A stretch of 64,000 nt of DNA from Setoptus koraiensis (Eukaryota; Animalia; Arthropoda): positions 10,106,001-10,170,000 of the forward strand of contig CM106586.1 of the NCBI GenBank assembly GCA_048013815.1, written 5' to 3'. Each line of letters starts with the position of its first letter. Within the stretch, counting starts at the first letter, position 1. The notes beneath the pieces are model-generated. The model saw only the letters and a program-made list of their open reading frames with translations, searched no databases and was not told the DNA's origin. Below, in pieces: positions 11,062 to 41,300 of the stretch. The position numbers and the translations under genes were made by a program.

Positions 11062-11172
11062 CTGCATAACACAATTACCACTGCTACAACTACCACTGTT
11101 TCTACTACTACTGCTTCTACTACTACTACTGCTTTTACTATTACTACTGCTACCATTACTACTGCTACTACT
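11062..11172 (+). repeat. Degenerate (ACT/GCT)n trinucleotide microsatellite
   Basis: Visible actactactgct... array. Confidence 0.85.
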
Positions 11173-11222
11173 AAAAAAAAATGCCAAAACGCACACGCAC
11201 CCTTTTCAACCCCCAAGATAAC

Positions 11223-11545
<323 letters not shown>

Positions 11546-12131
11546 TAATTTGGATAACTTCCCTCCCTGTCAGGCCGAAAGAGATCCCGAGCTCATTCAA
11601 CACAAGCTCGAAATCGAGTCGTAAGAGATATTATTTTTTTCATTTATGTATATATTAAATTACACAGAATGTTTTTAAGTCTACTGATATGACCAAACAA
11701 GAATGCCTGTTTCGCTTCTTTTCTTCTCATTGAATATCCCATCTCTATCTGTCACAATAATGTGAATAGGCCGATCCAGTCTCGCTGTGAGAAAATGTTT
11801 TCCTTGGCAAGATTCTCGTTTCCGGCGTACCGAGGGTATTTGTTGTTGACACTCGGGCAGCCAATGATCATTGTAAAGTGACGACACACTGTCCTCCAGA
11901 TCACGTATCGCCTTCGGCAGGTGAGATTTTCTGGCTGTGTCAGTTGTTTGGTAGTAGTGACGCTTTGTTCGTAATGCAGTTAAGCTCGCTCGCCGCTAAT
12001 AACCGTTGGCATGTCAATAATATCCGAAGCCGGCCAGCAGCCGTCATATTGATCGAGAACAAGGGTACGCAAATGGGTATTGGACAGAATGCCCGTCAAC
12101 TGGTGCACCCATTTGTCGTCTGTCAACGTTA

Positions 12132-12239
12132 AGGGGGCACCTCCTCTACGAAAATGGGTTGCCCCTGACACGCCCACAGAGGGTATTCAGATGCCCCATG
12201 TGCATGCAGACGGCCTCAAAAACAAAGAGGATCCGGCTC
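12132..12239 (+). pseudogene. Decayed RING finger remnant 2 (C-terminal half)
   Basis: RGHLLYENGLPLTRPQRVFRCPMCMQTASKTKRIRL resembles CGHxxCxxC...CPxC with the first three Cys positions substituted. Confidence 0.45.
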
Positions 12240-15128: not shown

Positions 15129-15301
15129 ATCGTCAAGTTGGCCGATCGGCAGGATCGTCAAGTTGGCCGATCGGCAGGATCGTCATAGTTGGCCAATCGG
15201 CAAAATCGGCAGGATCCACAAAGTTGGCAGGATCCACAAAGTTGGCAGGATCGTCATAATTGGCCAATTGGCGAATTGGCAGGATCGGCAAAGTTGGCAG
15301 G
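15129..15301 (+). repeat. Compound minisatellite (25-bp ATCGTCAAGTTGGCCGATCGGCAGG x2, 18-bp ATCCACAAAGTTGGCAGG x2, plus variants)
   Basis: Tandem units read directly from the sequence. Confidence 0.9.
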
Positions 15302-15786
15302 ACTGGAGGCGCAGATTTGCCAGTTGATGGTTAGATAAAATCATCGGCGTTATCGATACCGTTGAACTGATCTCGCCGGATCCTGCGTGAAACGTTTCGT
15401 TGGCTCGCTCGCGGGTTGACTCGCCCGCGCCAGATACAACCGGTTGAGACGAGTTGAACGCGCACACATGAACAAACTGGCAACAAATGCCGGCGCACAG
15501 TGAGACACAGGAAGCTAACAATTGAAAGAAAAACACTGTATCTGTCGGGGATTTCAGTAATCCGAGATGGTGCCGTATGGTGCACGCTAGAGTGCGCGTC
15601 TCAAGCGATTCATCCAGTCTAGCTGACCCACACGAGCCGCTGGAGCGAGCCAACAAATGTGACTCGAGTCTATTCATCGTATTTATACAATTATAAATAT
15701 TTAGTGACAGTATATTTTTTAAATATCGTGCTTGTCGCTTGTAAATGAGCCATCGGTCCTTGTTTGCATCGTTCTGGATCGGCTAG

Positions 15787-18120
15787 ATGGCTCGCGAAAA
15801 CACGAAAGGTGGCGCACGATTGTGCAACGGCCAAGGCAGCGATTCAATGCCGCTGTTGCGCCAGCAAGCCAGCCAATGTGCCGCCACTGAGTGCACCGAT
15901 TGCCTAAATGAGTGCATCCAAAATCAAAAAGAAAAGGTCGCGAACGGCGCTAGTGTCACTGGCACAATATCGCTGTCTAGTGGCGGCGGCGGCGCTGCTG
16001 CCGCGACAAACAATTTAAATCAACGCGCACTTACGAGTGCCAGCACCAAGTCGCAAGCCGCTTGTGCCAATCACACCCAAGCAAAACAATCACAACACAA
16101 CAACAACAACAACAACAACGGCAAAAATGGTAACAAGTTCACAAATATATTATTTGACAGCTGTAACAGAATAAAAGAGGAACTCGAATTGTTACAGACA
16201 CAAAATTTGAGCATCAGCATGGATTTAGAGAAGATGGTCAAGGAAAAGAAGGAGCTCGAGCGCCAGTGTTACCTGTACAAGGAGCTCACCCAAGAGCTCA
16301 ATCTCGAAGCGTCGAAACAAAACGAAATGTGTAAGCGACTGTTCTCCATCATCACGCAAATGATGCCCTGCCTGGCGCCCCATCAGCAGCATCACGTGTC
16401 GCAAATGTTGGATAGGGTGAGAAATTTGTCAGCGGCCGACATTGACTGCATGCTGAGCAGCCTGCTGATGCAGCGCAAAACATTTGACAACAACAACGAC
16501 ACCATCACCAGCGGCACCAGTGGCAACCAGCCAACAAACATGACCACCACCGGCAAGTTGCCGCACCAGCACACCGGCCAGACCAGCCAAACCGGAAGTG
16601 CACAAGCGGCGGCCAGCCAGCAGCTGAACAGCGCCCCCAGCGGCCTCGGTATTGGCTCCGCAGCCGGCATGGGCATTGGCTCCGCAGCCGGCATGGGCAT
16701 TGGCGCCGCAGCCGGAGCCGGAAGTGGGAGCGGCATTTGCGGCAGCTCACTGAACCCGGCCCAAGTGGCCATGCTGCCGCTCGCTGCCATAAACTCTGGC
16801 ATGCCGACGAGCGTCGCGGCAACCAGCACAATCAGCGCAAAAGCCACCTCAACCATCACCACAAGCAGCGGCATGACAACCACCAAAATTTCGCCCGTCC
16901 CGTTCCATCCGCTTCCGGCCGGCCTAAGTGTGCCCTGGCACCTACTGGCCTCGCCACAAGCGCCACACCCCTCTCAGTTGGGCCCGCTGGCGTGCGGTTT
17001 GCCGCCGCCGCCGCCGCCCATGCCCCTGGGGCCCCCCATGTATCATCACCATCAGCCGCCGCCCGGCCACCCGCCCGCTCACTATGCGCACCTGCATCCC
17101 GTGGCACTTGCGCCGTCGCTGCCGCCGCCACCCCCACCGCATTTGAGCCACGACTACCAGACGGCGTCGTCGTCGTCGGCGGGCTTGCTGTCGGGAGTGC
17201 AGCAGCAGCCCGGCACCAATAACCCGTCGTCTACCACGAGCAGCAGCAACAGCACAACTACTCAGCCAGCTGCCCAACCACCGCCATCACTACCACCCCT
17301 GCCACCGCCTCCATCTAGCGGTCATTATGTAATTAATCAGCAGCAGCACAACAGTTACGCCGGAAGTGGCGCTCAGTACGTGCCCGCGGACACGGGCTGC
17401 GGTGCCGGCGGTGTGTTGGCGCCCCCGCCGCCGCCTCCAAGCTCGCTGCACATGTCACAAATGGACTTGAATTTGCTGCGATCTGGCCACCACCACGCCA
17501 TTCACCCTGCCAACGTTATGATGACCAATGCCAGTTTGGCGCAAGCTCAATCGTCTTACCTGGCGCTACAGCGCCAGTATCAGCACCAAAGCCACCACCA
17601 GCAACAACAATATCAGCAACATCAACAAATCAATAATTTATACGCCGCCATTCAGGCAAACAACGACTGCTTGCGTCAGCGCCACCAAGACGCCATCTAT
17701 TGGAGTGGCAACAGTGATTTGCATAGTCAGAATGGGGCCCCACACAGTCAGCAGCAGCAGCCGGGCGGTGGCGCCTCAGCAGCTCGTGCCAATACGTGCC
17801 TGGCCGGCAATTTAGACACCGGCAACAACAAGTCGTCGCATCGAGCGGCAGCGGATCCGACCAAAACTTTATTATCTCAGCCGGGCGAATCTCATCACAT
17901 TATGCAATCGCAACAGGTTGTGGCCAGCAATCTCTGCTGCGGCAACAACATCAACAGCGGCTTGTCCAGCAGTGGCAACAGCAACAACAGTGCCAACAAC
18001 AGCAACAGCAACAACAACAACAACAACAACAACAAGACGACTGGCACAGCTTCAGCTGGCCAAAGATCTCAACAACACCAGCAGCAGCAACAACAACAAC
18101 AGCAACAACAGCAACAGCAA

Positions 18121-18167
<47 letters not shown>

Positions 18168-18550
18168 GCAACAACAGCAACTACAACAACAGCAGCAACA
18201 ACAGCAACTACAACAACAGCAGCAACAACAGCAACTACAACAACAACAACAGCAGCAACATGTGATTAATCTCGATAGCTCGCCGAGGACTGCATCTCCA
18301 AATCTAACGAGCAACGGCAACAACAATAGCAACAAATGTAACGGCAGTGCGATTGCACAACAGCAACAACAATTAACTAAAAATAGCAACTGCGGCAACA
18401 TTGGCTCGGCAGGAAGCGCCGACCAGAACGTCAGCAAAAAGGTGCGCCTGATGCAACCGGAAACGACGGGCGACAACAGAGAGAAGGCGCTCGTTGCTGT
18501 CGGTCAGCAGCACCACAGTTTGGCGGCCAGCAACGGAACACAACAGCAGC

Positions 18551-18581
<31 letters not shown>

Positions 18582-19524
18582 AGCTCGATCGGCGAGCGCT
18601 GGCCGGCACCACCATCATCAGCAATTGCAGCAGCACTTGCTGGCTTCGACGCCCGATTCGCGGGACTTGGGCTACACAAATGAAACGCGCAGCGCCGACG
18701 ACACTGGTGCGGGCCGCCCGGGCGCCGACGACAGAGGCGGGTCGCCGCCGTCGGTAAACGGCTCGGGCCCGGATTCCGTGGGCGCCAAGAGTTCGAGGCA
18801 ACAACTTTCGAGCGGCAACAAATCGGCCTCGTTGACAACAAATCAGCGAATGCCGGGCTGCAACGCCGACTTGCGAGACGACGAAGTTATCGCCCTGTCG
18901 CCGCCCAAAAGTCGCAACAACAATCAGTCGGCACAACAACAATTACATCATAAACAAGTGTACGGCGGTCACGGTCATTCTGGCGGCCCGACGCTGAAAT
19001 TGCCCTCGGTCAGTGTGGGCGCGGTGGGCAGCAGCAGCGGTGACGGTGCGCCGATACGGTCGTCGTATCAGCCGGCAAACAGAACATCGGCAAAGATGTT
19101 GGCGCACAGTCACAACAGCGACAACGCCACCACAACCACGGGTAGCGAGGCCCTGTCCAGAAGTCGACATTTGCTCAAAGAATGCCTAAAGGACGCCGGC
19201 CCGGACGACGGCAGCCCGGCGGCCAACACGCCCAAACAGCACACTACCTACAGCAAGCACCATCGGGCTGCCGGCCCGAGCAAGCACGCGGTCGATGGGA
19301 AGCCGGACAGCAGTAGCCACTATCATCACCACAACAAGCCACAGGCGCCCAGTTTGTTGGGCCCGCTGGCGTCCGGTTATGCGCCAAAATGTCGGCCGAT
19401 ATTGAATTTGGCGCAAGCGGTTCCGGCCAGCAACGGCGCCGACGACGGCACCAGCTCAACATCTAACCTGTCCGGTGGCTCGTACTATCCGAGCACGGCG
19501 CCGGCGCGCATGGCCGACAGGTGA
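15787..19524 (+). CDS. Groucho/TLE-family protein with N-terminal Q domain and long low-complexity tail; no WD40 domain detected
   Basis: KFTNILFDSCNRIKEELELLQTQNLSISMDLEKMVKEKKELERQCYLYKELTQELNLEASKQNEMCKRL matches the TLE_N Q domain (KFTIADTLERIKEEFNFLQAQYHS...[33 protein letters not shown]). A possible donor AG|GTGAGG lies at the ORF end. Confidence 0.82.
18070..18258 (+). repeat. CAA/CAG polyglutamine-coding repeat (~60 codons) inside the Groucho-like ORF
   Basis: Seen directly; it also generates the shadow poly-C, poly-N and poly-T ORFs in the track. Confidence 0.95.
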
Positions 19525-20630
19525 GGGCAACAAATTGTTCAAACAACAAACAGATTATTGTATGGATTACAAACTGTAACAAATATATTGTAAAATATTG
19601 TGTTGAGCACACCACTGATTTATAATACTCTCAGTCGACCAAGCCAACAAATAAACACTAAGATTACGTTGAATTAATCCGCTGCGTCACTTTAATCCGG
19701 CGACATGCGCACCTGATTTGATTCTAGCTCTGGCGAGTCGTTCGAGTTGTATCCGGCAGGGGCGCCAACTCGAGAGGCGCACAAGGGACAGTGGACGACA
19801 AAATTGAGAGCCTCGGTGAACAATGGGGAGCCTCGGTGAATAATGACCAGCCCCAAAGGCATGAATGGGTGCCACATGTAACATTCGTAATGTTAGGTGC
19901 TATTGTGGGAGCCAGATGGCGCCCGTTTCCGTTGTCACTCGAAGCTGGCCAACGGTTGGGCCTGGCCAATAGCTCAGCCTGGCCAATCATCAAGCGAGGC
20001 TTCGACAGGTGGCGAGAACGGCGCAACCTGCGTGCGTTCGAAGTGTGCGTTCCGAGTTGGAAGTTGGCACTTCGAAGCGCCCCCGCGTCGGACAATGCCG
20101 GCCAAGATCGACTCGCCAATGTCACTCGATACGTTGTGTGTGTGTGTGTGTTGCTCATTAGTGGCAAATGAGTGTCGGCCAATCAACGGCGAGCCTTGGC
20201 ATCGCCGGCCTTTTATTAGACAGCTGACTGGGCTGTCTAATAAAAGTGCCCATTCACGATAATATTTATTTATTTATTTATTATACCAATTCACCTGTAA
20301 CAGGTCGCGTACAGCAGCAACTCTTGCTTTGAATTGTTACGTGTGTCGTTGTGTCGTTGTGTGTGTGTCCAATGCAAATGATCACAGACAGGCAAGCTGC
20401 AACAATAAACAACAACAATGCACTGATGACGTAATGACTTAAAGACATAAATGGACAATACGATAGATACATACAAATTACACAGGCGCACCAGATACAA
20501 TGGACAAAGGACACACGCAGAGACAATGGACAATGGATGTGATTTATGTATTTAATTTAACTGTATTAGTAGCTGAGTGTATTTGCAGTGATAGTGGCGC
20601 CACCAAGCTCACCTGTATACCTGATATCAT

Positions 20631-24193: not shown

Positions 24194-25905
24194 GATATTC
24201 ACAGCCGATACGGCCGATACATCCGGATGGCCGGATTCAGTTGGGTTTAGCTGGATCGCATTTGGCCAGATCGCATTCGGTTGGATCGCGTTCGATTGGG
24301 TCGCGTTTGGCCGTTGGATTCAGCTTGGCGCTCGCAATGTTAGTTAGCTAAATTAGTCAGAGGCAGGCGGCTAAATTAGTGACAGCCAGTTAGACTGGCC
24401 AGACAATTGTGCGATCCGGCCGGCATCGGATGCAAACAGTGGCCAGCAATGTGTAACAGCGGCAACCCGACAGTGACAGTCGGGCACAAACAACAGCTAA
24501 CAGTACGCAATCAAGGTGTGCCAACGAAAGTAATATCTCAATCAATCTCTGGCTGTTGTTTGCACAACCTGTTGCTTTTACTGGCCCACTCACTTGTGCG
24601 ACTTGCAAGTGTCACAGTCGCAACAAACTCGCTGCCAACTTACCTGTGTCACTCTGGTCTGTTTGTGATCTGTTTGAGCTGGATGGTGCTGCTGCTGCTG
24701 CTACTGTGGCGTAATGGTCGCAACAGCAACAGGTAAAATAATGACGTAACAACGAACTGGCCACAACAAACAACATGCTGCGCACCAGTTGGCTAGTTGG
24801 CAGTATCAGCGCTACGATATTTAACAGTGAGTTTGGATATCCACCAATGTCGCAAACAAATTGCTCGCTCTGACTGTTGTCGTTGTTGCTGTTGCTCTGG
24901 CTGTCGCTGTTGCTCTGGCTGTTGCTGTTGTTGTCGCCAAACAATCAGAATCACTTGGCAGCCAGCTTCGCACTGTGTGAGCGCCAGCAAAAGCATTGTG
25001 CGACGGACACATATCGGGATATATTGAGATACGCTGAGATATACTGGCAATTGTGAGATATACTCCGATTTGTGAGACACAGTGCCGTAATCACTGTTGC
25101 TTGAACCATGTGGCTCGCTGTTATGGAATGAGTTCACCTGTTGCTGTGTGTATGATTAGCATTGTCGTTATTATCATTGTCATTTCATTTATAATTTGAG
25201 TCGCCACTGGGTGTATCGAGCAAATCGCATAGCACTGGCTGTTAGTTGGTAGTTGCTAGTTGTTTGTTTGTGTCCATTCGACTTTTTTGTTTGTTATGTC
25301 GCCAAGTTGAGCACACTCACACACACAATGTTAACACAATTTTAACACAACACTCACTCATTGCACTCACTATGCAAATTCTGCCACTGACAAATTCATA
25401 AACAATAGCGCCCGCATTACGCCGCATATTATGCAACACAATTATGCACTGTCATGTAATACAAACATACACAACATAATTGTATGATTAATTCTCCATT
25501 CCTCTCATCAATTTCGCCACCATTTTAACATCAATCAATCGATTTGCTCAAATTCATTTCCTCGAATCGCCGAATTGCCCCCAAACTGTCCTCAAACCGT
25601 CCTCAAATTGTCCCCAAATTGTGTGTGCCCGCCATCGATGACAATGCTCACAAGCCACATCATACGACCCAACCAACAACAGTTTACACACAGCGGCCTC
25701 ACATGCTCAAAACGATACAACAACAGCAACAACAGCAGCAACAGCAGCAACAACAACAACAACAACGTCAATAACAAGACACCTTATAGCCCCAATTGGC
25801 AATCATAAACACAATTGCACTTCAATTTCAATCCAATCAACAGCTCGTCATTAAATATTGCATCACAACTCTGCTGTGCGGCCTCAGTTCAGACACACAT
25901 TTTGA

Positions 25906-28900
25906 ATGCTCACCAAGTATCATGCGATAATATTTATATCTATACTCACTATGCTGGTGGTAAGTAGACAACTATCTAAATACTAATAAATAGTTATTAC
26001 GCTATTTTTATCTTCGCAAAGATTCATGGATTTACCGTGTGAGAAGAACTTTGATCTCGAATTGACCCTCTTGCAGGAATCATTCCAAATGATAGTCAGC
26101 CATCTATTGACGGACCCAAACAATAATGTTCGCAGAACGATATTAACTTCAAATATTTCGAAACTATGCTTGTTTTTCGGAAGAGAAAAGACTAATGAGG
26201 TCATTCTAAGTCACATAACTACATTTCTGAATGACAAGAGTGATTTCAGACTACGAGCCGCATTTTTTGATAATATAAACTGTGTGAGCACATATTTGGG
26301 GCCTTATTTTGCTGCAATCTTAAAACCTATAATGCAACAAGGATTATCAGATAGTGAGGAGAGTATCATCTATAAATGTTTGACAGCGGTCTCCTCTATG
26401 ACACAACCAGGTTTATTGAGCAAAAGTGTTGTGTATGAACTTCACCAGGAGGCCGTGCCACTATTATCGTTCCCCAACAAATGGATAAGGAATGCAGCCA
26501 TCAATTTTGTGGTAGTTCTAGCCAAAGTATTGAAGTCTTGAAATCTTGCCTCGATGCTCTGGATAGCGACAGGGTTCAAGTTGCTTTAAGAGTTGCCTCA
26601 ATAGCGGAACAATTAGTTGATCGATGGTCTGTCAAGTTCGAAATATACGATTGGGATCTCATAATAAACATCTGTGATTCTTTTGCTAACAAGCTGACAA
26701 AACCCTCCTCTGCTCTGGCACCTTTCAATGGCCATCCTCAGAGCAACACTAATTCAACAACACCATACCAATCGGCCCCGCCATCTAACAACAGTACCAT
26801 AAATAGGTCGTCCAATTCGACAACATCTTCAAACCATAATAACATTCAATCATCCAATAACATTTCCCAATATGCAATGAATTTGTCTTCTATTGCTCTT
26901 ACCAACATATCAGATCTTATGTATCATCTCAACAATCATGGTCAGTCATTTTCCCCATCAAGTGATAGCCTACCCAACAGGAATGATGAATCTCTAGAAA
27001 TGATACAATCTACACTTCAACACCTCACTATGACACTATTGAATGAAAGTACTCATGGTAATATATATAGCTGTGATGACAACCTTTACAATTTGATTGA
27101 AAAATACTATCATTTATTTGACGAAACCATTATTATCGGTCTGTTGGAATATCGAACAAAGATCGTCAATACATTAGATGAGAGGTACATCTCTAACCTC
27201 TCAAGATTGATATCTAAATCTTTTAAACATGAATCACGGAAAGCAATCAGATTGAAATCAATAGCTGCCTTGTCGCAAATATTTTCCACTCACAGAGCTA
27301 TATACGAGGACGAATTGATGGAAAGAATATTCATCCCGAATTTTTTAAATGCTGATCAAGAAAATGATCTTAGCATACGCAAATCAATCGTTTACTTGTT
27401 ATTGGACTTCGCTTCTATGTGCCTGAATCATAGGCATTGCCTAGAGGCTCTAAAGATGGATAAGGAATGCAGCCATCAATTTTGTGGTAGTTCTAGCCAA
27501 AGTAGCTTCAACAATCGATTTCAACAGAAAAATTCTACCTGCTATCAAGCTGCATATCAAGAGAGACATTCACGGACTAAAAGACGAGAGTGTTCTCCTT
27601 GATTCTCTGCAAGAACCCCTTCCTAGGCCTATCATAGAATCTATAATTTGTGACAATGGTGATATTGACAATATTTTTCATTCAATTTCAAAGAAGAAAA
27701 TGTCCCGAAACAGTCAACGCTTTAGTGGAGCCAAGCAGATGTCTGAAGACGAAGAAATTCTCGCTGGCCTAAGTAGACATTGTGAAGACAGGCTGATTGA
27801 TTCTGAGTTGATACTTCGACGGATTCATAAGAATAAGAGAGGTGCAGTTAACAAGATAGTCGAACCCACTATCAACATTCCCAAGCAAGATGCGCAAATC
27901 CAGAATACCTCCAAAGTTGAGCAAAGAATGTCCGCGACTTTATCTCTATCAAAGTCAACAAAACCACGCGGTGTCCTATTAGCTCATTTGCATGAACACA
28001 AGGGTACTATAACTAACTTCAAATATTCCGAAAAACAGGCATAATTTCGAAATATTTGAAGTTAGTATCGTTCTGCGAACATTATTGTTTGGATCCGTCA
28101 ATAGATGGCTGACTATCATTTGGAATGATTCCTGCAAGAGGGTCAATTCGAGATCAAAGTTCTTCTCACACGGTAAATCCATGAATCTTTGCGAAGTCTC
28201 TGCTAAGTCAGCCACATTTGAAGCTAGCGATATTCTTACGAGCACTGACTTATCATAGACAAGGGGACACAGACTTGGTAATATATAATCTATGAATACA
28301 TTAGCGTCACTGGGTAGCAGCCGATCAACATGTTTCAGAAGTATATTAAGGGAGGATATGGCTGATGAACGAACTTGTGCGTCTGTACTTGATATCATAT
28401 AGATGAAATACGGTAACACTCTATCAATCACATATTCTGACATTATATGAGGCGAAGATTCCACCAATCGTACACATAGTTTAAGTGCCATAAGTTTGGC
28501 ATGTGTAAGCCTCAAAGTCCGCAACGTAGATGTTACTAACACTAGTGGTAGTAAAAGTCCATGCTCGTCTTCAGTTATTATCTCCGTAAGCAAAGCATCG
28601 ATGTCCTCAGTCAAAGATAGGATTTTTGTGTCAGGACTTTGAGTTATAAGCTTCGTGAAGTACTTGAATAATGTGTTAAAGTAGGCAGGAAACAAGCTAG
28701 GGGTAGATTGATCGAGATGATAAGACGCAGAATTTCTTTTCATACTATCCAAATCAGTAAGATTGAGTATTAGCCTTGCAATCCTTGAATCGGATATACC
28801 ATTTTCAATTATCTTTGAAGGTTCATACTGGTTCTTTTTAAACATCAGTATCTGACCAAGATCAAACAAAGAGCTGTTAGCGTTGTCTTCCAAGAAAAGC

Positions 28901-31900
28901 TCTGCCAAAACACACCCTAGACTGAATAAATCCATTTGAGGAGTCAGCTGATTATAACCATCATTTTGATCAGTTGCTTCAGGATATTGCTGATAGTTTG
29001 TCTCGTTTGGTGCTGTCTCGACAAATCTCTCAGGGGCCATATTACAACATTGGCGCCGAGAAGTGTCGAAAAAATATGAGAAGTCGGATGGGTTATTTTC
29101 AGGCAGCGTTACTGGCTTGTAGGAGGCGAAATCCGTTATTGATACCCACAAAAACGACGAAACCAGAACATTTTCGGACTTGATGTCGCCGTGAAAGATG
29201 TTTTTCTTGTGCAGTAATTGTACACATCTTAGTAGTTGATAAGCAATCCATCTTTTTTCTATGGAAGTCAAGAAGGTCCATTTGTATGATCCTTGAGATC
29301 CTGCATGTGTATACTCAAAAAAGATTGTAATCTTATCTCGATCTGAATATAAATTCATTAACTAATTATTTCTCCCAATCAATTACCTATCCACAATTGC
29401 TAAAAACAACAACAAAATTGCTGTATGCCATAATTTGCTTGATCAGTTGCTTGGTCTGCACTTGCTAAGCATCGCGAGTAATGTAATCAACCATCAGAAC
29501 AGCACCGGCTCGGCCTCTCAGCCAGGGGCAGCTCTGGCTAGGGGTGCGCAATCCCAGAATAACTTTGTGGCGACCACCAGCACCAACAGAGGTGTCCCAA
29601 TAACAACAACAACATCTAACAACAATGATTACACTCATCCTATCAGTTTCGACCGCATACTGTCCAGCAGCAACAACAGACAGGTTAATAGTGACCAATT
29701 TTCCAGCAACACCAACAACAACAACATCAACAATGACAACAATCAACAACAAGTGACAACGGCCGGCATGAGGCGTCTGGTCAATCAGCCAGAGTATCCC
29801 ATTGATCATTATCAGATTAGTCAATCAACCAATCAACCCTTGGACAATCAGATACCTCCCACGCCAACGCAACAACAGCAGCAGCAAACACCACAAGCCA
29901 ACAACAACAACATCAATAATAGGCAATTCCACAATCCCTTCGATAGTCCGTTCAGTCCTCCCGTGCCCCCGTTGCCGCCCAATCCGCCCCCGTTGCAAAC
30001 TAATCCGCCCGCTGTCCAGTCGCCCGTGTCCGGCTCACAGCACCAATCAACGCAATCGCCGCAAGCCTCAATGACGGAATCCATCACGGCCACCAACCAG
30101 CCCCAGCAGCAATTCAACAATCAACAACAGTCGCCACCTCTGGCCAACGACAACATCAACAACAACGGCAACAACAACAACCGACCACAGCAATACAATT
30201 CGTTGAGGCCCCTATTCGTTCCGGGCGCGATTTCTTCGCACACAGCGACTCCTGGCGGCGGTGGCGGCGCCCCAATGAGATTGACCGATAGAAATCAGCA
30301 GCTCGATAGTGATACCTATACGCCGCCCATAGTGTTCGGCACCAGCAGCAACCAATTGGCCTACAACAATCAAGATGCTCCGTTTGGTTTGAATCAGCAA
30401 CAGTTAGACGCTCACAACGTCTACGACCAAGTCGCCAACAGCGGCGTTGACTCGGCGAACCCTATGAGGGACCCCAACAGAGACCAAACGAACAGCAACA
30501 ATTTCCAAAACAGAGCTCGACTGGCCCAATTGGAGCCCAACGGCGACATCGGTCGCCAGCAGCAGGCTCCTCGGCACCAGACGTCGCCCTTGCCGGCCTC
30601 CTATTTTGAGCAGCGTCACAAGCAAGCGCCCGACTCAAACAGAAGCCCGCAGCCACAAAACAACAGGTTGTCTAATTTTGTGCCCACAGGTGAGTACGCG
30701 AGCAGCGATCTCAGTATCGGTTTGTGTCGGCAACCGGACTTAGATGCGCCGATATCAACTTGACTTGATTGGCTCCACTTCCGGTCACACTTTTCGCACT
30801 ACAAAATGATGCAATAATTAATTATTGCATCATTTGTAACAACAATAATTAACTAATTAATTATTTAATCAATTACAGCCGACAATATAATAATTCTGAT
30901 TCCGAATCTCTTTTCATTCTCGCACAATTCCGACGTTAGACAAGCGCATTTTGCCGCCTCCCGTGCCCGCTCACTACAAAGATGCGCATTTGAACATGGC
31001 GAGGAAACTTCCGCCGCCAATAAATGCAAACATTGACATAACGAGAAACCTGTCGCCATCTAGATTCGCCCATGGCCAATCACCAAAATACCATGCAAAC
31101 AACAACAACAACAATAGACAGCTCACCGGGGACGCTGCACCGGATGTTGGACTGACGGCCTTGCCGCCGTACTCATTGCCTGTTCCTCCGTCGTCGTTGG
31201 AGCAACAGCAGCGGATAAATCACAATTTAGAGCATCAACAGTTGCAACAATTGTCCGCACAGATACCGTTGTGTGCCCGAGCGTTGGGCGCCAGCGCCAA
31301 CGACACTCATCACAATCAAGTGATAATGTGTCAAGAGGACGCCGATTATCCGACCAAAGCTGTGATGGGCGCACTAGAGTTGTACGGGCCCCAAATACTA
31401 GAACAAATAATGCCACAAACAACAACGGTTATCAGCAACAATCACCTGTCCAAGCAGCGTCAGCAGCAACAGTTGCAGATGGACTCGCTGAGGCCGGCCC
31501 CAATTAATTCGCATCATCGTGATGCGCACAGCATTAATGTTAATAATAACAACAATTTCAAGACCAACAGCTACGACAATTTATGCAAATCAAAAATAAC
31601 GCTAGTGCAACCGAGACGAGCCAAGAATCTGCAGGGCCAATGGAAGGTTGTGGTGAATTTTCCCAATGCGGACCGCTTCAGGGGTATCAGTCTAAGCCAG
31701 CCGGTGCGGATAGAGGAGTGCCTGATGCCGATGAACAGCAACAATCAATTTGCGGAGTGCGGAGGTCCCGACAGAAACAACAACATTACCTCCACCATAC
31801 CCAAGACGAGATGCTTGCAGCAATACGGCGATCACCGCCTTGTGGCGTGGTCCTCGCAGCGGGGCCTGCACGTGGACATGTTCCGGCTGCCCGTCTCTTG

Positions 31901-31922
31901 CTCGTGCCACCTGAGACGATGA
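25906..31922 (+). CDS. Spaetzle-family cystine-knot ligand, most like neurotrophin 1/Spz2; predicted exons 25906-25959, 29447-30689, 30940-31922 (759 aa)
   Basis: The C-terminal knot LCKSKITLVQPRRAKNLQGQWKVVVN...SQPVRIEECL...RCLQQYGDHRLVAWSSQRGLHVDMFRLPVSCSCHL and the prodomain CQEDADYP motif are typical of the family. Exon 1 MLTKYHAIIFISILTMLV (GTAAGT at 25960) joined at TGATCAG|29447 to LLGLHLLSIAS gives a signal peptide. Intron 30690-30939 is phase-consistent and the total length 2280 nt is divisible by 3. Exon 1 is inferred. Confidence 0.8.
26012..26182. repeat. Inverted repeat arm A (171 bp; partner at 28026-28196; 4 mismatches)
   Basis: Manual reverse-complement comparison. Confidence 0.95.
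26481..26529 (+). repeat. 49-bp perfect direct repeat copy 1 (copy 2 at 27456-27504)
   Basis: ATGGATAAGGAATGCAGCCATCAATTTTGTGGTAGTTCTAGCCAAAGTA occurs at both positions. Confidence 0.97.
26530..27455 (+). pseudogene. TSC2: Internal fragment of tuberin (TSC2/gigas), N-terminal helical region
   Basis: VLKSCLDAL...YDWDLIINI and LLEYRTKIV...YISNLSRLISKSFKHESRKAIRLKSIAALSQIFSTHRAIYEDELMERIFIPNFLNADQENDLSIRKSIVYLLLDFA align with human TSC2 VAWDILLNI and LISYRAQSI...[76 protein letters not shown]. Confidence 0.85.
27456..27504 (+). repeat. 49-bp perfect direct repeat copy 2
   Basis: Identical to 26481-26529. Confidence 0.97.
27456..28010 (+). pseudogene. PIK3R4: VPS15/PIK3R4 fragment C (end of HEAT region to the start of the first WD40 repeat)
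   Basis: Continues WIRNAAINFVVVLAKVASTIDF...LLDSLQEPLPR and ends at KPRGVLLAHLHEHKGTI (VPS15 PKGLLVAHLHEHKSAV). Confidence 0.88.
28026..28196. repeat. Inverted repeat arm B (171 bp; partner at 26012-26182)
   Basis: Manual reverse-complement comparison. Confidence 0.95.
28026..29342 (-). pseudogene. PIK3R4: VPS15/PIK3R4 fragment A (pseudokinase domain lacking its N-terminus, plus first HEAT repeats)
   Basis: FLTSIEKRWIAYQLL...HGDIKSENVLV...TDFASYKPVTLPENNPSDFSYFFDTSRRQCCNMAPERF is diagnostic of VPS15. The myristoylated N-terminal part (MGNQL...) is not seen in the window. Confidence 0.9.
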
Positions 31923-32340: not shown

Positions 32341-35300
32341 TTAATAGTTGGCTGAGGGCGCGACGGCGGGCCGGTAGTTGGAGGCCATGGGCACGCCCTT
32401 GGGCAAACTGAGCTCGTCTTCGGTGAATTTCAACCGGAAGCCGCGTCCAATGTTGTTTTTGTTTGTGACCAGCTTCAGCAGAACGCTGGCACCCTGCGAC
32501 ACGTACTCCTGGGGCAACTGGTCGCCGCACAGCGTCAGCTTGAGCTGGGGCTCCGATTGGAGCTGTCTGTCCAGGACTGAGGCCCACTCCAGCAGTTGCA
32601 AATAGTTTTGATCGCATTTGTTGCGCGACCCGCTGCCGCCGTCCGTGTTAGCCGCGCTTGCCCGCATACCCGTGCCCGCCGGCTGGCTCACCAGAGACAT
32701 ATCCTGCCATGAGAGGCGCAGTTTGTGCACTCCGTGGCCGCTTATCAGCCAGTAAGTCGGGCCCGACTGTTGCTCGCCCGTAAACGGATTGGGATAATTG
32801 GGCGACGCGACGCTGCCCGAGTAGCCCGTGATGTTGTAAAAGTTGTACCTGGGAAGCGAGTAATCACGCCCTTCGGGAGCCCAAGCTCCGCCGCGCGGCT
32901 CCGGTATCGCCGACGAGAAGGTTATTTGATACCGGACAATGTCGGCGTGCAACTTCAGCTCAACGTGACTCGACTGAGTGTAGACGGGATTGGGTAGATT
33001 GCGGCCGCACAATTTGGCCAGGCTGCGCCGGACATTGGTCACCGGATCCAGCTCGTTGATTTGCATGTAGTTGGAGGCGCACATAATGAGGCCGGCGGTG
33101 GGATCGGCCGCGCTCGTGCCATTGGCCGCCGTGGCGGTCGCTCGGTCGTCGTCGGGATCGTCTGTCGACTCGACCACAAACTTGGAAAAGTACAGCACAA
33201 TCCTGTGCTTCGGCGTGGGCGCCCTCAAATCGATGACGCAATCGCTTGCGGTCGCGGTCGTCGCGGTCGCTGCGGGTGTCTCGTAAATGCCCCGGGTTCG
33301 GTACTTGACGGGCGTCATGAGGACACCGTTGTCGTCGTTGATGGTCTCGTTGCAAACGCTGCTGTCGCGATAGGTGATCTGAAAGCCGGTCGGTTGGCCC
33401 CTTTTGGGTAGCCGCGACGACACGAATGTCATGCGGAAACCGTCGCTCACGTAGATCGGTTGCGGGATGCGCTGACCGCACAGCCGTGCGGTGTCGCCCG
33501 TGCCGCTGTAATAGTTGGCGCGGTTTGAGTTGCCCGACGACGGTTGCAGCATTGAAGTCGCTTCGTAGTCGATGATTTGACCGTTCGAGCCGCTCGTCAG
33601 CACGGGAATCTGGCTTTCGAGCTCTAGGTAGTCGCCCGCGGCACAGTCAATGTCGAAGGCGGTGAATTGGAGCCTCTCGAAGAGGGCGCTCCATTGCATC
33701 GAGTTGAGGTGCTTGTCGATGACCATCATGACCGCTCGGTCGAGCAGCGCCCTATCGGACAAAGTGGTCAGGTTAGCGCCGGCCGCTTGGTCCGCCTGGT
33801 CGGACTCGGACACCAGCTCGAATTGCCAGACGCAGCGGCGCAGCGGCGGGTAGGCCAACGGGAAGTTGGGGCTAGCCAAAGTTCGGGTTGGCGAGCGCTG
33901 TTGGCCGGTTGGCGCCACCGTCGATATGGTTTGTTCTGTGGTGTTTAACCAGACGATACCGCCGCAGTCGCGCTCCACCGAGCTAAATTTCAGCCTGAAT
34001 CCGGCCCGCACATTCTGGGTGTCCGTGTGAAAGTGAACGTAGAGCGCGTGTGCGGAGCTTTGCATGGGCGCGGGCACCTCGGAGCCGCACACCCGGTCAA
34101 TGAGGCCGCTCTTGTGGCTAAGACCGTCGCGAATCTCCAGATAATCGTAGACGCAGCGGTGGCCGGCGCCCGGGCCGGTTTTGTTGTCCGACGGCGACTG
34201 GGGCGCCTCTAGGTCGAATTTGACGAAGTCGAGCCGCACAAGTTTGTTTTTGTTGGGCACCGTTATCAGCCACCAGCAATCGAGTTGATTGTCGTAGTTG
34301 CCGTCCTTGTCCGCGTCGGGCGATACAATGACGCCGTCGCTGTCGTGCAGCCGCCCCCCGCAGCCCTGTCGCTCGCCCAGGCTCGTCCGGTAGGTGGCCT
34401 CGAAGCCCTTGCTCTGCAAATTGAAGTCGGTGCTGAATTTCACCTGCATCACGTTGCTCTTGCTTTTCACGACGGGCAGCTGACTTCCGCCGCCCGGGTA
34501 CGTTCCGCAGAAGCGGCCCAGCAGCAGCCCGTCGTCCGGCGTGCGCGTTTTGTTGGCTGCCGCGCGGGGCGGGACCGCGCTGGGCGCCAGTCCCGTGTCG
34601 CGCAACTCCACCGAGTCGCAACCGCACGAATCGCACGACTCCAGCTCGAGCCGGTTGAACACCAGCTCAACAATGCGGTCCCGGGCCACCGTGATGGTCC
34701 ACACGCAGTTCATGTCGGGCAGGTACGTGCCGCCGCCCGAGAAGGGCGCCAGCATACCCGACGGCTCGGTCAATTGGCCGCCGCACTGGGACGACTCGTA
34801 CACCAGCTTGAAGCCCTTGGCGCGCGCGTACCCGTTTGTGTGCAGGAAAACCTTGATTTGTTCGTACCCAAACACGGACGGGATGGTCTGTTTGCCGCAA
34901 TAGGGCCCCAATTTGCGCCAGTTTTTCGCCACCCGCTTGCTGGTGTCGTTGGCCGAGGTGAGGCGCGCATACACGTACACATAGTCGCTCAGACAGCCCC
35001 GATTTGCGCCCCCACCGACGCCGCCGCCCATTTGCCGGCTGCCGCCAGCCGCTTCCGGTTGCTGCTGTTCCAGTTCGAAATCTTCGAATTTCACCATGAC
35101 AAACCGGCCCGGTCTCTCGTGCCGTATTGTGTATTCGCAATTCAGGTTGTTGTCGTACGGGCGCGGGTAATGGGGCGACGTCAGCACGCCCCTGGCAGCC
35201 ACCGGGCCGGTGGTGTTGTCGCTGACGGTGAACAGGCCGCCGCACACGGCCTCGTAGTTGAGCTTGTAGCCGGCTCCCTCAATTTTGTCGTTGCTCTTGA

Positions 35301-38300
35301 ACGTTATGCGGGCCCGATTGTTGCTCGTCACAAACGATCCGCCGGGCCGCACAAAACCGCAGAATTTGCCTAGAACGGGCGCGCCCTGAGTCCGCCTCGG
35401 CCCGTCGTCCACTATCATCTGACCGTCGCTGTTTATGCTGACGTCGGGCACGCTGCCCGAACCGCTGCTGTTGCCGCCCACCTGGGCGCCGGCGAACAGC
35501 GGATCCTCCAGCTGGACGTAGTCGTTGGCGCAATCGTCGGATTTCTCCAGCTCGAAGCGCCCAAAGAAGCTCATGTTGACCCGGTAGCCGGGCGGCAAGC
35601 TGATGTCGTAGACGCAGCGGGTGTTGTTGGCGTACTTCTTGAGCGGATCCTGGATGGCCATGCGGGCGCCCCAGCGCGGGCCGGTTTGCACGTCGCGCTC
35701 CCGGGGCGACCTTATGGTGCCGCGCAGGTAGTCGTAGAACTTCTGGCCGCAAACGCCGTCCACGATGGTGCGGATGTCCATCTGAAAGCCAAATAGATCG
35801 GGCGTTTGCGTGAACGGCCGCGACACGTTCGACTTCAGGTCCGCGGCAGGGGGGGCGGGCCGCGCCGCAGCCGGGCCGTCGCTGTCCGCGCTGAGCCGGT
35901 GCTCTCGGAAGGCGCCTACAAATATGATCGAAAACGGTCGGTCGTCCATGGTGAGCACGGTGTCGTTGTTGAGCTTGGCCGTGTTGGCGTCCTCGGCGCA
36001 GTACCGCACCACCAGCGGCGAGTCCATGAGGACCCCGCTGCGGATCTCGACGAAGTCCTCGCTGAGGCAACCCGTTGACTGTTTGTTGGCCTGCTTGTCT
36101 TGCGCAATCGTCGGGCGCAAATTAAACGAATCGAAGCGCAGTTCGCGCAGTGAGCCCCACGAATGCACGTCCCATTTGCATATCCGCGGCGAGTAGGAGC
36201 CCGCAACGGGCGCAGCCGTCGAGTTGCCGCCCCTCGCTTGCGTCAGCGCATAATCCGTGTGACTGGCTATTTTGCCCGTGAAATCGTACAACCGTCCGCC
36301 GCAATCTTGCTCGAAATATCTGCCCCGAACACCGCGGTAGAAGGCGCCCACAGATTGATTGGCTGGCGACAACGGCGGCCCGCCGGTGACGGGCAAATTG
36401 CGCGTATGTAGCGAGATGAACGGATCGGGAATTGTGGGCACAAACACGTGATAGTACCATTGGCCCGTTTTGTTGCCACACACCATATCGGCGGGCTCCG
36501 CAGAACCGACAGCGCCCATGAGCGGGAGGTCGGTGGGGCCCAGCGTCAGCCCGTACATGCCGCACTGGGCGCCCACTGTGGGAGTGTCGCTGTCGGCGTT
36601 GTTGGCGTTGCCGATGACGGGTATTTCGAGCACGTCGAATATCACGTAGCTGGTTCGCTTCTTCCAATTGCTCATCGTTCTCACGGGCCAGTAGCAGTCG
36701 ATGTCGGCGGAATCGGCCCCCGTCCCGTCGTCCGTCTGATTGAAGCGGCCGCTCACAAAGTAGCCGCCGCTGTCCGCTGGCGCTGCAAACGGATCCGGGA
36801 TCGCTTCCCATCGGGCTCCGCCGACGGAAGCGGCGCCGGCGCTTGCGGGCCCGTCGACAGGGCTCAGCGGGTACACGAGGCTCCTGCTGCACAGTTTGTC
36901 CTCCTTGAACGAGAAACTGGCCGAAAAGCCCTCATCTTGAGCCAGATATTTGCTCGAGAATCGCACCAGCAGCACGTTGCTTGTCGACCTGATCGCAACT
37001 GGCGCGGGACCGCTCGTGGCGCCCGCTTTGTCGTCAATTGCGTGAACTGCGGGCCGCTTGATGGGCCGGCCCGTGGCGTCAAACTGTTGATCGCGGTCGG
37101 CCGCACTGTCCGACGAATCGGCCGCCTGTTTGCCGTACGACAGCTTGCAGTCGAGTTGCTTGACGTGCCCGAGGGCGACCAGTTTGTCCATAGCGTCGCC
37201 CGACAGGCTGGCCCAGCGGTCGTAGTAGTCGACCATGCGGCTGTAGTACAGTTTGTCCACACATTTGCCCTGTTGGTTTTGCTTCAAATTCAAACTGTCA
37301 AAGGTCAGCTTGACCGCACCGCGCCACTCGGGCACCTTCATCGTCCAGCTACAGGTGCGCTCCTGGGGCATGGGCTGCGGGAAGTTGGGCGACTGCAGCG
37401 AGCGGTCGGTCTCGTCGAGGTGGCCGCCGCACCGGGTGCGGCCCGCCTCGTCCGCCGTAGAACTGGACACAAACATGTGAAAACCGCGCCCGGACACGGC
37501 GTTGTCCGTCTTGAAAATGACCGTTATGACGGGTCCCGTCGACTTGACTGTCACCCACAACAGTTTGCCGTCGGGTCCCCATTGCACCGCTTGCTGTTTG
37601 CGCGTGGCCACACTGCCCACCGTGTCCTGCCACCGGTCCGAGCTAGCGGCCAGCTGTATGTCGGCGGTCAGTAGGCGGCTCGACGCGGTTCCGTTGTTGC
37701 CCGTCGGCGGCTCGCTCGCCTGTTTGGCCTGTTTCATTTGCAACAGTTTGCCGTTGCACCATCTGGCCAGCAGGGGCGCGTCGCTCGTGTCGCCGTCCCT
37801 AAACTCGAGATAGTCGCCCGTGGAACAATCGGCGCTTTGGCCGGCCAAATCAACGTCGTACAATTGCGCAATCAGTGTTTGTTGGGGCGCCGCGGAATGC
37901 AGATAAAATTTGCAATCGCGATTATTGGTGTAGTTGCGCGGGTAATTCTTGCTTTGCAAACGCAAGCCCGACACCACGTGATAGGTGCCGCCACAGTCGT
38001 TGATGGTGACGCGCGCCTTGAAGGCGCCCAGCGCAACGCGGGCGCCCGCTGGATCCGCGCCCGGCGCGGTCAGCCCGAGCCGCTTGCCCGGATTTGTGAC
38101 AAAGCGCACAAACATGTGATTGTCCGTCGACTTGACACTGTTGGCTCGCGGCGGCAAACAATATTTCACCAGGCGGTGCGACAGAGTGGAGCCCCCGTCG
38201 TACACGGCCACAAACTCGGTGCTGGCGTCGCACTGCTGCTGCCCGGCCAGATAATTGGTGGACATTTCGGCGCCCGCTTGCTGCTGTATGAGCGCCTCCT

Positions 38301-41300
38301 CGGTGGCGCTAGTGTCAAAATCGAGCCGGATAATGGAGTGCTCGTCGGTGTACACCAGCCAGTTGCATTCGATGTCGTGCGGGGGCGCCTGGGGCCAGTT
38401 GGGCGAGCGCAACTCGAACGAGGGCTGCTCAGAGCTCAGCTTGACGCTGTCCGAGCATGATTGCGACAATTCGCGGTACGCAAGCGCAAACTCGACCCCG
38501 TTGTAAGTGTCGGGCACGTCGGTCGCCCGCTTGGCGTCGCGCCCGGGACCCGGCAAAATGGCGCCTCGATGGAACTGAACCAACAGCTCGTTGGAGAAGG
38601 ATTCGGCGGGCAAAACGGGCAACTTTGTGCCGCACAGGCGCTGTCGGGAGCCGAACTGGGGCCACATGTCGGTGGGCCCGTTGTACAAGGTGAAATAGGA
38701 GGCCGAGGCGCCCAGGCAGGCGTCGCGCAGCGTACTGTTGGTGTTCGAGTTGGAGTTGGGCAGCAAAAATTTGCTGAACGACAGGCTGATGCGGCGGCCG
38801 GGCCGGACTCGGATCAGCCACTGGCAATCGGTAGAGTTGATGACGTCGTATTGGCTCAGCCGGTATTGGCGGTAATTCTCGAGCAGGCCACCGCACCGGG
38901 GTTTCAGTGTCAGCTTGAACGACACGACCCCGGACTGGCCGCTGCCCGTACCCGCCTCCTGGTACCGTTGATACCGGTGCACGTAGGTGATTCGGGCCAT
39001 GTTCGAGGCCAAGCGGAATGTTTGCCGGCGCCGGCCGCACAACGTCCTGTTGACCGACCAGTCGGCCTGAGCAATGCTCACGGGCGCCACAACGCCCTGC
39101 TCCGCAAAATCGCTTCCGCCCGCAATGTCGCCCGGCCCGTCGGCCAGAGACGGTGCGGTGCCCACTTCGAATTGCAGCCGCTCGTAGTAGCAGGCCTCGC
39201 TGAAGCTGTCCAAATTGAGCTCGCTGATGTCCACTTGGAAATGCGACCCGGGCCTCGTGACGAACGTCCACGAGCAGCTGGAATTGGGCCGGAAATCGGA
39301 CATGATTATGGCCGCGGGCAAGCCCGACTCGTCGCCATCGGCGGGCCGGTTCACCGTCAGGCCGGCATCGTCTTGGCCCGTCTTGGGCACAGATCGTGAC
39401 TCGCCCGCGCTCGAATTGGCCTGCGACGGGTCCGCACCGTTTGCCGGCGGGGGCCAGCTAAGCTCGAAGGGCTCGCTTCGGTTTAGCATCAGCTCGGTGA
39501 AGTGGCAGCTGTCGCTGGGCCGGCCCGACGCCTGCGGGCCGGCACCCGGCTCGGGCACAAACACATTGGCGCTGCTTCCGTTTACGTGCGCAAACACGGG
39601 CTCCAGGTTGAGAGACTGCTGCGAGGCGGACACCCGCGACCAGCGCATCAAGAAGCGACCCTCCGAACGTTTGTTCTGATAAATCACATACAGCCAGTTG
39701 CCCCGGCTCCTCAGGCGCCTCGACAGGTCCTGGCGAACGCGAGGGTCTCTAGCGGCGACCACGGGCGCCCTATTCTGATTTTGGTTGGCCGAGGCGGAAG
39801 TGGCGATGTGCTCGTACGACAGGTAACCGCACAGGGTGGCCAGGGGCCTCCCCCATTTTGGCTCGAAGTCGTAGATTAAGATGGCGTCTAGGTCGCAATC
39901 TTGCTCTATGGAGCCCAAGTTCAAGTCGAGCAATTCCAGCTCCAACTGGTCGCCCTCTTCCGTTTCCAAATGCCAGCTTATTGATGCGTCCAGTTTGGTC
40001 AGCATCGGGTACATGGGCGAACTGATGATGCCGTAGTCGACGGGTGCTGAGGCGCGCGTCGCCAAAATCTGCATGCCATAGTGAATAGTGTACTCCAACC
40101 GGAAGCCCTTGCCCGTCTGGCTGGTGTCGTCCGTTCGGAAGCGAATCCACACCTCGTCGGTCAAGGTGACATTGTGGGGTAATTCCGGCTTTTTTGTGCC
40201 GCAGTACCGGCCGATGAGCACCGACTCTTCCCATAGACTGTCCGTATTGTAGGCCAGTCTGTTGTGCGACGAATCCTTGATGTTCCTGCCCACACTTTCA
40301 ATTGTTTGCGACGACACGGGCCGGTTTGCCTGGCTGGTGGTCGCGGACAACGGGCCGGCGCCCGTTGCGGCGCCCAACGTCGACCACAGATACTGCTTTT
40401 TCCACATGGGCAATTGTCGCACCTCCACATAGTCCAAATTGCAGTGCTCGCTGTCTTGCAAATCAAAATCCACGAACTCGAGCGTTATCGTGTGACCGGG
40501 CGACGCCTTGACAAAATAATTGCAATCCATGTTGGGCTCGTAACTGTTCGGATAGTTGGGGCTGGCGAAGGAGCCCCGCTGCGACCAGTAGTCGCCGCCG
40601 CAAAAACCGTTGGTGTTCCTAACGATGGAGCGCAGCACAACGTCGCCCGTGGTCACCAAGCTCATGCTGGGCCCCACCGACACAAACTCGTTTTTGGCCA
40701 CAATGTCGTCGTTGTCGCACAACACATAGCGCGGCCTAATGCTGGAATTGGTGCCGCTGTCCGCACCCGCACCGGAAGCCGCACCCGCGCTTTCGGCCGC
40801 GTTGGTAAGCGGAAATTCGGTCATGTTCAGGCTGAACGGGGTGCCCTCAAACAGTCTGACGCAATGGCTCCGCTTGTCCCGGCTGGACTCGACCAGATGA
40901 GTTATCGAAACGACAATCTTGTCGCCCGGGTCCTCCGATATCAGATGCCACAGGCACATTTGCTCCCGGTCCGAGGCCAGCATGCTGCTGGCGCCCGCCT
41001 GGCGCCGCTGGTACCAATTGGGCCGGTTCGGGTAATTGGGCGTTTCCACTATTGCGGGCCCCTGTCCGTAGTGGAGCGCCGTCGGCTGCGCATTCTGCCG
41101 GACGCGCACCTCTGAGCCGCACAATAGCCCGTAGCTGAGCTTCCATTTGCCCGCCAGGGTGCCCTTGGTCTGGAACACAACCCGAGCCCGGCTTTCACGG
41201 GTCACGCTCACCACGGGCTGACCGCCCAACGAGGCACCCAACGAATTGTCTGGCACGCTGCCAGTGTATGCCGGTGGCGACCATTGGCCACAGTATTTGG

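Follow-up and report, generated by a model that had tools for sequence, protein, structure and literature searches.

A cassette of VPS15 and TSC2 fragments in the putative first intron of a spaetzle-family gene of the mite Setoptus koraiensis

The window analysed here is a stretch of 64,000 nucleotides from the mite Setoptus koraiensis (GenBank assembly GCA_048013815.1, contig CM106586.1, positions 10,106,001 to 10,170,000 of the forward strand), and all window coordinates below count from its first letter. It contains a gene of the spaetzle family. Between the first two putative exons of this gene lies a cassette that is built from coding pieces of two other genes, VPS15 and TSC2. The insertion of the cassette into the germline is real, and in the independent samples described below it is fixed or nearly so. 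It was probably produced by template-switch repair, in one or a few DNA-level events that filled a break in the intron. Such repair is of the type known as MMBIR (microhomology-mediated break-induced replication) or fork stalling and template switching (FoSTeS), here with joins like those of polymerase theta.

This kind of event is ordinary and belongs to a known class of structural mutation, while its anatomy is unusually clear. On this reading the locus is a natural multi-template repair scar, fixed in wild populations, whose five junctions can be read to the base, and it illustrates how template switching can leave behind long repeats of coding DNA, both direct and inverted. No new kind of biology is involved, and programmed unscrambling of the locus is without support.

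Architecture of the cassette and its host intron

The features of the locus are listed below. The VPS15 pieces are called A, B and C, the five junctions are called J1 to J5, and positions in VPS15 refer to the coding sequence (CDS) of a sister species. X1, X4, X5 and X7 are four public runs, and the Logan contigs of these runs were placed on 25200-30100.

25906..25959, + strand: putative first exon of the spaetzle-family gene; 18 codons with a signal-peptide start, then a GTAAGT donor; in frame with 29447 onward
25960..26011, + strand: start of intron 1; AT-rich original intron DNA, 52 nt; contigs 25780-26041 of X1 and X4 run from here into VPS15
26012..26529, + strand: VPS15 piece B; sister CDS nt ~1433-1950 (aligned 1435-1950); Pfam VPS15-like_hel
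26530..26535, + strand: filler TTGAAG at the junction of piece B and TSC2 (J2); 6 nt; the TSC2 contigs of X1 and X4 begin at 26536
26536..27457, + strand: TSC2 (tuberin) piece with an open frame; 922 nt, of which the final 2 (AT) are common to the start of piece C
27456..28012, + strand: VPS15 piece C; CDS nt 1902-2458, extending to the first WD40 blade
28013..28025, no strand assigned: snap-back templated insert at the junction of pieces C and A (J4); 13 nt; exact reverse complement of 28053-28065 in piece A
28026..29276, - strand: VPS15 piece A, inverted; CDS nt ~352-1603; kinase subdomain VI onward and HEAT repeats
29277..29446, + strand: tail of intron 1; 170 nt, AT-rich, CAG end, original intron DNA; without VPS15 similarity
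29447..30689, + strand: exon 2 of the spaetzle-family gene; Q/N/P-rich, with a GTGAGT donor at its end

The pieces are identified by protein-level matches. An open reading frame (ORF) of 459 aa on the minus strand (27979-29358) corresponds, from its residue 28 onward, to residues 118-571 of human PIK3R4/VPS15 (PDB, E 6e-82), and it also matches the Pfam families Pkinase, VPS15-like_hel and HEAT. VPS15-like_hel is matched by 26026-26541 (+) as well. The region 26532-27455 (+) matches, at E 4e-14, tuberin residues ~390-531 in PDB chain 9ce3_A, which is isoform 4 of the human protein. A preliminary description of this DNA had placed a VPS15/TSC2 cassette between the GTAAGT donor and the acceptor at 29446, and this is confirmed by sequence, Pfam and PDB. 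The order and identities of the pieces given there also stand. The end of piece A, which was put at ~29345, lies at 29276, and the intron tail measures 170 nt instead of ~100 bp. The TSC2 piece keeps its identity, and its boundaries are corrected to 26536-27457, with the 6-nt filler at 26530-26535 separate from it.

The cassette thus consists of four segments from two genes in mixed orientation (A is inverted), which overlap in donor coordinates by 171 nt and 49 nt. All of its bases except 19 junction bases derive from VPS15 or TSC2. Together the VPS15 pieces cover codons ~118-819 of 1212, and codons 1-117 and 820-1212 (the last 393) are absent. Exact-match look-ups of ORFs from the window and of one VPS15 fragment found no record.

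The two overlaps appear in the DNA as repeats. A direct repeat of 49 nt (26481-26529 and 27456-27504, 100% identity) has its first copy at the end of piece B and its second copy at the start of piece C. An inverted repeat of 171 nt (26012-26182 and 28026-28196, 4 mismatches) has its left arm at the start of piece B and its right arm in piece A; the overlap of pieces A and B corresponds to 169 nt when they are aligned to the VPS15 of the sister species. Both repeats are exactly as they had been described. It had also been noted that excision between the direct repeats and inversion between the inverted repeats would give one continuous VPS15 frame, and against the coordinates of the sister gene this arithmetic is correct.

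To find relatives of the pieces, 1.8 billion representatives were searched with HMMER and a word-indexed search was then made. Among named VPS15 proteins the closest belong to the mites Aceria tosichella, Dinothrombium, Halotydeus, and Tetranychus, and an origin in a fly, which the CAA/CAG repeats might suggest, is rejected on this ground. P0174, a sister-species protein of 1212 aa found in a Logan assembly, shares 96-98% identity with all three VPS15 pieces. It is encoded at L001:3721-7359 by one ORF without introns (1212 codons, CDS 3639 nt), and at the DNA level the pieces are 88-90% identical to this gene. By blastn, piece B is 89% identical to L001 5155-5670 (98% protein identity to P0174), piece C is 90.5% identical to L001 5622-6178 (96% protein identity), and piece A is 88% identical to L001 4064-5323. 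The pieces are therefore probably copies of the mite's own intronless genes. Genes of eriophyoid mites, among which this species probably belongs, are largely intronless, and their genomes are extremely streamlined. Since the parent gene itself has no intron in the sister species, the lack of introns in the pieces argues neither for nor against an RNA origin. On the 12.5-kb sister contig L001 there is no spaetzle or TSC2 sequence. VPS15 lies there tail to tail with a PLC-beta gene (7638-11171, 1177 aa) that also seems to have no introns, as in a compact, intron-poor genome.

The GC content at third codon positions (GC3) is 0.37-0.40 in the cassette vs 0.62 in the spaetzle exons. Genes of the window range in GC3 from 0.31 to 0.76, and neighbours contrast with one another (0.31-0.39 vs 0.66-0.76; 2621-4051, 15787-19524, 32341-47811, 54110-56920, and 57853-59616). 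Because of this spread, codon usage is no guide to foreign origin here. Horizontal transfer, which the gap in GC3 might suggest, is rejected on the range of GC3 among the genes of the window and on the 96-98% identity to the sister VPS15.

From the GTAAGT donor at 25960 to the CAG acceptor at 29446, intron 1 measures 3,487 nt. The predicted join of 25959 to 29447 would keep the reading frame, and a hydrophobic run would cross it to form a single signal peptide. Within exon 2 itself there is no early ATG. In the contigs of the four runs the 25959/29447 splice does not appear. The in-frame join and the lack of this ATG make the location of the cassette in intron 1 of a spaetzle-family gene plausible. 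The Spaetzle cystine-knot domain is found by Pfam at 30951-31922, 3' of intron 2, and intron 2 is ~189 nt long (GTGAGT...CAG).

The right boundary of the cassette is marked in several ways. The alignment to the sister-species VPS15 diverges at 29276/77, and contigs of the runs branch at the same point. The best 150 VPS15 relatives all begin at or after residue 13 of the 459-aa ORF, nearly all of them at residues 26-29. The boundary of VPS15 homology, the divergence from the sister gene, and the contig branch at 29276 together make 29277-29446 the tail of the intron, and the intron before the insertion would then have been about 222 nt, a size resembling that of intron 2. Insertion of the cassette (26012-29276, 3,265 bp) enlarged intron 1 ~15-fold, contrary to the streamlining trend of eriophyoid mites. 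Codons 1-27 of the 459-aa ORF, into which the Pfam kinase alignment reaches, were considered as part of VPS15 or of another kinase, but this is rejected and they are assigned to the intron.

Independent samples, donor copies and age

X1, X4 and X5 are three samples from three studies, and they differ mutually and from the window at a dozen single-nucleotide polymorphisms (SNPs). These SNP differences and the separate origins of the samples make them independent of one another. J1 (intron/B) is crossed by contig 25780-26041 in X1 and X4, and these contigs reach 30 nt (k-1) into the repeat, the limit for a graph with k=31. J2 and J3 (B/TSC2/C) are both crossed by contig 26500-27473 of X5. J4 (C/inverted A) is crossed by 27475-28095 in X1, 27983-28123 in X4, and 27983-28074 in X5. 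J5 (A/intron tail/exon 2) is crossed by 28045-29755 in X5, 29247-30061 in X1, and 29247-30100 in X4. Every cassette-specific junction is therefore on at least one whole contig, and the five junctions, which the preliminary description had proposed to check by unamplified long reads or PCR, are each carried by contigs of X1, X4 and/or X5.

Junction contigs have about the depth of the flanks, which places the insertion near fixation. For J1 the depth is 79 vs 75 in the flank (X1) and 135 vs 107 (X4), and for contigs specific to J4 it is 11.9 vs 11 (X5) and 82.5 vs 107 (X4). The CAA/CAG (poly-Q/N) tracts at 29628-29955 and 25714-25790 are a simple repeat of coding DNA that occurs genome-wide. They have a k-mer depth of 10,000-20,000 and produce many false joints in the contig layout.

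The same contigs point to native copies of the donor genes. In X1 and X4 there is a TSC2 contig of exactly 26536-27457, and the contig of piece A ends at 29276. In X4 and X5 the contig of piece C ends at 28012. Breaks at these outer ends of the pieces (26536, 27457, 28012, and 29276) cannot be attributed to the cassette's own repeats; they indicate a second context outside the cassette, namely the native genes. The depth over the pieces, in word counts that are a poor measure of copy number, is ~2x that of junction-only contigs in X4 (193-222 vs 82-135) and 1.3-2x in X5. A comparison of depth between cassette and flanks had been proposed before; its outcome in X4 and X5 agrees with a second copy, and its outcome in X1, given below, does not. 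X7, a run of low depth with another organism label, has the VPS15 and TSC2 pieces at 97-100% identity with no flank at all. It carries the native join of B to C (26480 to 27456, a 975-nt skip, with 49 nt ambiguous). Native VPS15 and TSC2 would thus seem to stay intact elsewhere.

At three TSC2 sites (26889, 26892, and 26949) the window reads T, A and T; X1, X4 and X5 all have G there. Each site is the first position of its codon (S>A, I>V, F>V). Divergence between cassette and native gene, a difference between populations, or faulty polishing of duplicated DNA may account for this.

Over 700 non-redundant codons, comparison with the sister species gives a synonymous divergence (dS) of 0.66 and a ratio of nonsynonymous to synonymous divergence (dN/dS) of 0.028, with zero stops and zero frameshifts. 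The low dN/dS means that nearly all of the divergence built up in a functional gene, and therefore the copy is young or has been refreshed by conversion. Open frames in the cassette are not evidence of function. Most likely the cassette has no function, and its frames are open because it is young, perhaps with some gene conversion now and then from the parent gene.

The sister VPS15 is assembled in one 12.5-kb contig, so a near-identical second copy is unlikely there. Since the sister gene has no sign of such a copy, the insertion probably post-dates the split from the sister species. A search for the empty orthologous site with the Spaetzle domain gave only contigs of 1.3-1.8 kb from relatives.

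The arms of the inverted repeat differ at 26115/28093, 26143/28065, 26164/28044, and 26170/28038, and all four differences are synonymous. Contigs that are specific to one arm show that two of these sites vary among the samples (28044 for X1 and 28093 for X5). This pattern looks like the standing synonymous variation of the native gene.

Junction signatures and the origin of the cassette

The junctions have the marks of DNA end joining and template switching. J1 (intron/B) and J5 (A/intron tail) are blunt. At J2, the filler TTGAAG is the reverse complement of CTTCAA, which stands at bases 2-7 beyond the break in native VPS15; over 6 nt this match is weakly significant, and TTGAAG also resembles the adjoining TTGAAA. 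J3 (TSC2/C) has a microhomology of 2 nt, AT. The insert of J4 and its neighbouring bases form a hairpin stem of 22 bp with 1 mismatch (fold z = -7.5), and the snap-back is primed at a near-palindrome (TTTCGAAA-like). Snap-back synthesis is described for alternative end joining, both for synthesis-dependent microhomology-mediated end joining (SD-MMEJ) and for end joining by polymerase theta (PMC2943611, PMC5728401, PMC4912351), and MMBIR produces templated and complex insertions (PMC8421209, PMC5120786).

In the proposed mechanism, a break in intron 1 would have been repaired by repeated strand invasion and template switching. VPS15 nt ~1435-1950 would have been copied first (piece B). The new strand would then have jumped to TSC2, where 922 nt were copied, and returned to VPS15 at 49 nt behind its exit point. 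This return would have created the direct repeat, and copying would have continued to nt 2458 (piece C). Piece C would next have been joined, by end joining assisted by the 13-nt snap-back, to an inverted copy of nt ~352-1603 (piece A), whose 171-nt overlap with piece B gives the inverted repeat. Finally the inverted copy would have been ligated to the far side of the break. From this we infer the order of switches, a single event, and DNA rather than RNA as template. The 49-nt and 171-nt repeats would then be overlaps from back-tracking in copying, not recombination pointers. The second choice of the preliminary description was that gene fragments had entered the intron naturally, by templated insertion, and the junction signatures and the sample contigs support it.

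Complex FoSTeS/MMBIR insertions (PMC8421209, PMC5120786) are like the cassette in that segments are copied from several unlinked donors, orientations are mixed, and back-tracking leaves overlaps; the donors stay intact in such insertions, as they probably do here. Their joins also have microhomology of 0-2 nt or short templated fillers. Most of the cases described are variants in human disease or cancer, whereas the cassette lies in a mite intron and is fixed in natural populations, its segments are small (0.5-1.3 kb), and its DNA donors are deduced. As for SD-MMEJ or polymerase-theta end joining (PMC2943611, PMC5728401, PMC4912351), the exact reverse-complement insert of 13 nt at the near-palindrome of J4, whose template lies 20 nt away, fits it well. 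This pathway adds tens of nucleotides, not kilobases, and thus explains the joins of the cassette but not its long segments.

Several observations weigh against this account of the cassette. Polymerase theta by itself does not copy kilobases from two unlinked loci, and two modes of repair must therefore be combined. The four arm mismatches correspond to ~10% of all synonymous positions of the 171-nt arms, which is above what a single recent copying of one allele would leave; this excess implies two template haplotypes, two events, or later ectopic gene conversion with native VPS15. Pieces C and A have a depth of 35-40 in X1, half that of the flank (75), and this misfits a simple two-copy model. 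The native VPS15 and TSC2 loci of the same genome are deduced from contig breaks and depth rather than directly seen. Some intron DNA may have been lost at insertion, and the cassette boundaries are fixed only as closely as alignments and contig breaks permit. Finally, the parent genes are intronless, and the intron content of the pieces is compatible with an RNA template too.

Alternative origins and functions

An RNA-mediated origin is unlikely. A reverse transcriptase, of the long interspersed nuclear element (LINE) type or other, would have jumped between VPS15 and TSC2 mRNAs as templates, and the chimeric cDNA would have been integrated or used to patch a break. Every piece is pure coding sequence in a long open frame, as an mRNA template would give, and with an intronless parent gene the missing introns are no counter-argument. 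Template jumping between mRNAs yields chimeric retrocopies, and inversion with overlap recalls the twin priming of L1. Like such retrocopies, the cassette has intron-free pieces of more than one gene and an inversion with an overlap. However, neither end of the cassette has an A-run that could represent poly(A). The flanks of the cassette as they stand in the window show no target-site duplication either (...TTTTTAT and TCCATTT... have nothing in common). No piece includes the 3' end of an mRNA (piece C ends at CDS nt 2458 of 3639), and twin priming would put the direct and the inverted parts in the opposite order. The 13-nt snap-back at J4 is a signature of DNA end joining.

A function of the repeats is less probable still. 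The 171-nt arms in the spaetzle pre-mRNA would form double-stranded RNA (dsRNA) that is processed to small interfering RNAs (siRNAs) against VPS15, like Drosophila hairpin RNA (hpRNA), or the repeats would serve as pointers for inversion or excision. Drosophila hpRNA loci, which give endo-siRNAs, arise from inverted duplicates of their target genes. In general terms, the cassette is similar in being an inverted duplicate of part of a gene within a transcribed region. Its arms are 98% complementary and derive from the candidate target gene, the cassette is near fixation in wild samples, and both donor genes belong to the autophagy/TOR pathway. Its loop, however, is 1.8 kb and its arms are only 171 nt, which is short relative to known hpRNA loci. 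The repeats are also fully accounted for as overlaps of copied segments.

A more specific version, which we would rate marginally lower than the functional reading as a whole, is that dsRNA of the arms doses down native VPS15 and so ties an immune/developmental cytokine gene to the control of autophagy. If true, it would account for the near fixation and for arm differences that are synonymous and variable between populations, with ongoing conversion between the arms and the functional gene.

As for pointers, codons 1-117 and 820-1212 are missing, and consequently no rearrangement of the cassette gives a gene. The only joined form observed (in X7) has no flanks and equals the native gene; short-read contigs cannot reveal inversion. 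The last choice of the preliminary description was a switchable or developmentally unscrambled locus. It finds no support, with the first 117 and the last 393 codons absent and a native VPS15 present elsewhere in the sister species. The scrambled genes of ciliates are similar to the cassette in having out-of-order segments, one of them inverted, with shared repeats at their ends. They differ from it in that its set of segments is incomplete, one segment is foreign (TSC2), and an intact native gene exists elsewhere in the sister species. In addition, a mite has no nuclear dualism of germline and soma, and no rearranged product of this locus is found in the contigs of the four runs.

An artefact is highly improbable, although amplification or assembly chimerism had been the favourite of the preliminary description. 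The cassette would then be a chimeric molecule from amplification or from a long-read library, or a mis-assembly, and would have no chromosomal counterpart. Foldback junctions and short microhomology are typical of chimeras from multiple displacement amplification (MDA) and libraries, and mites are tiny, so that their DNA is commonly amplified. The junctions, however, are present in three SNP-distinct samples from three studies, mostly at about flank depth, and on this ground the artefact is rejected. Moreover, the presumed source assembly was made from unamplified DNA. It is reported that this assembly of Setoptus koraiensis has 47 Mb in two chromosomes and was built with PacBio and Illumina as well as Hi-C data from a pool of >100,000 wild mites (PMC11920263).

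Transposons such as Pack-MULEs and Helitrons carry mosaics of fragments from several loci, yet it is highly improbable that gene capture by one of these or a similar element brought the fragments into the intron: no direct or inverted repeat pairs the cassette ends (26012 and 29276) as terminal inverted repeats would, target-site duplication, Helitron termini and a non-genic backbone are absent, and no second cassette-like sequence exists within the 64-kb window.

Two further features of the window were observed. A scaffold gap of 500 N at 1719-2218 is typical of Hi-C scaffolding. The region 32341-47811 (-), which lies directly downstream of the spaetzle gene and is read from the other strand, is one unbroken ORF of 5,156 codons with a GC content of 0.60.

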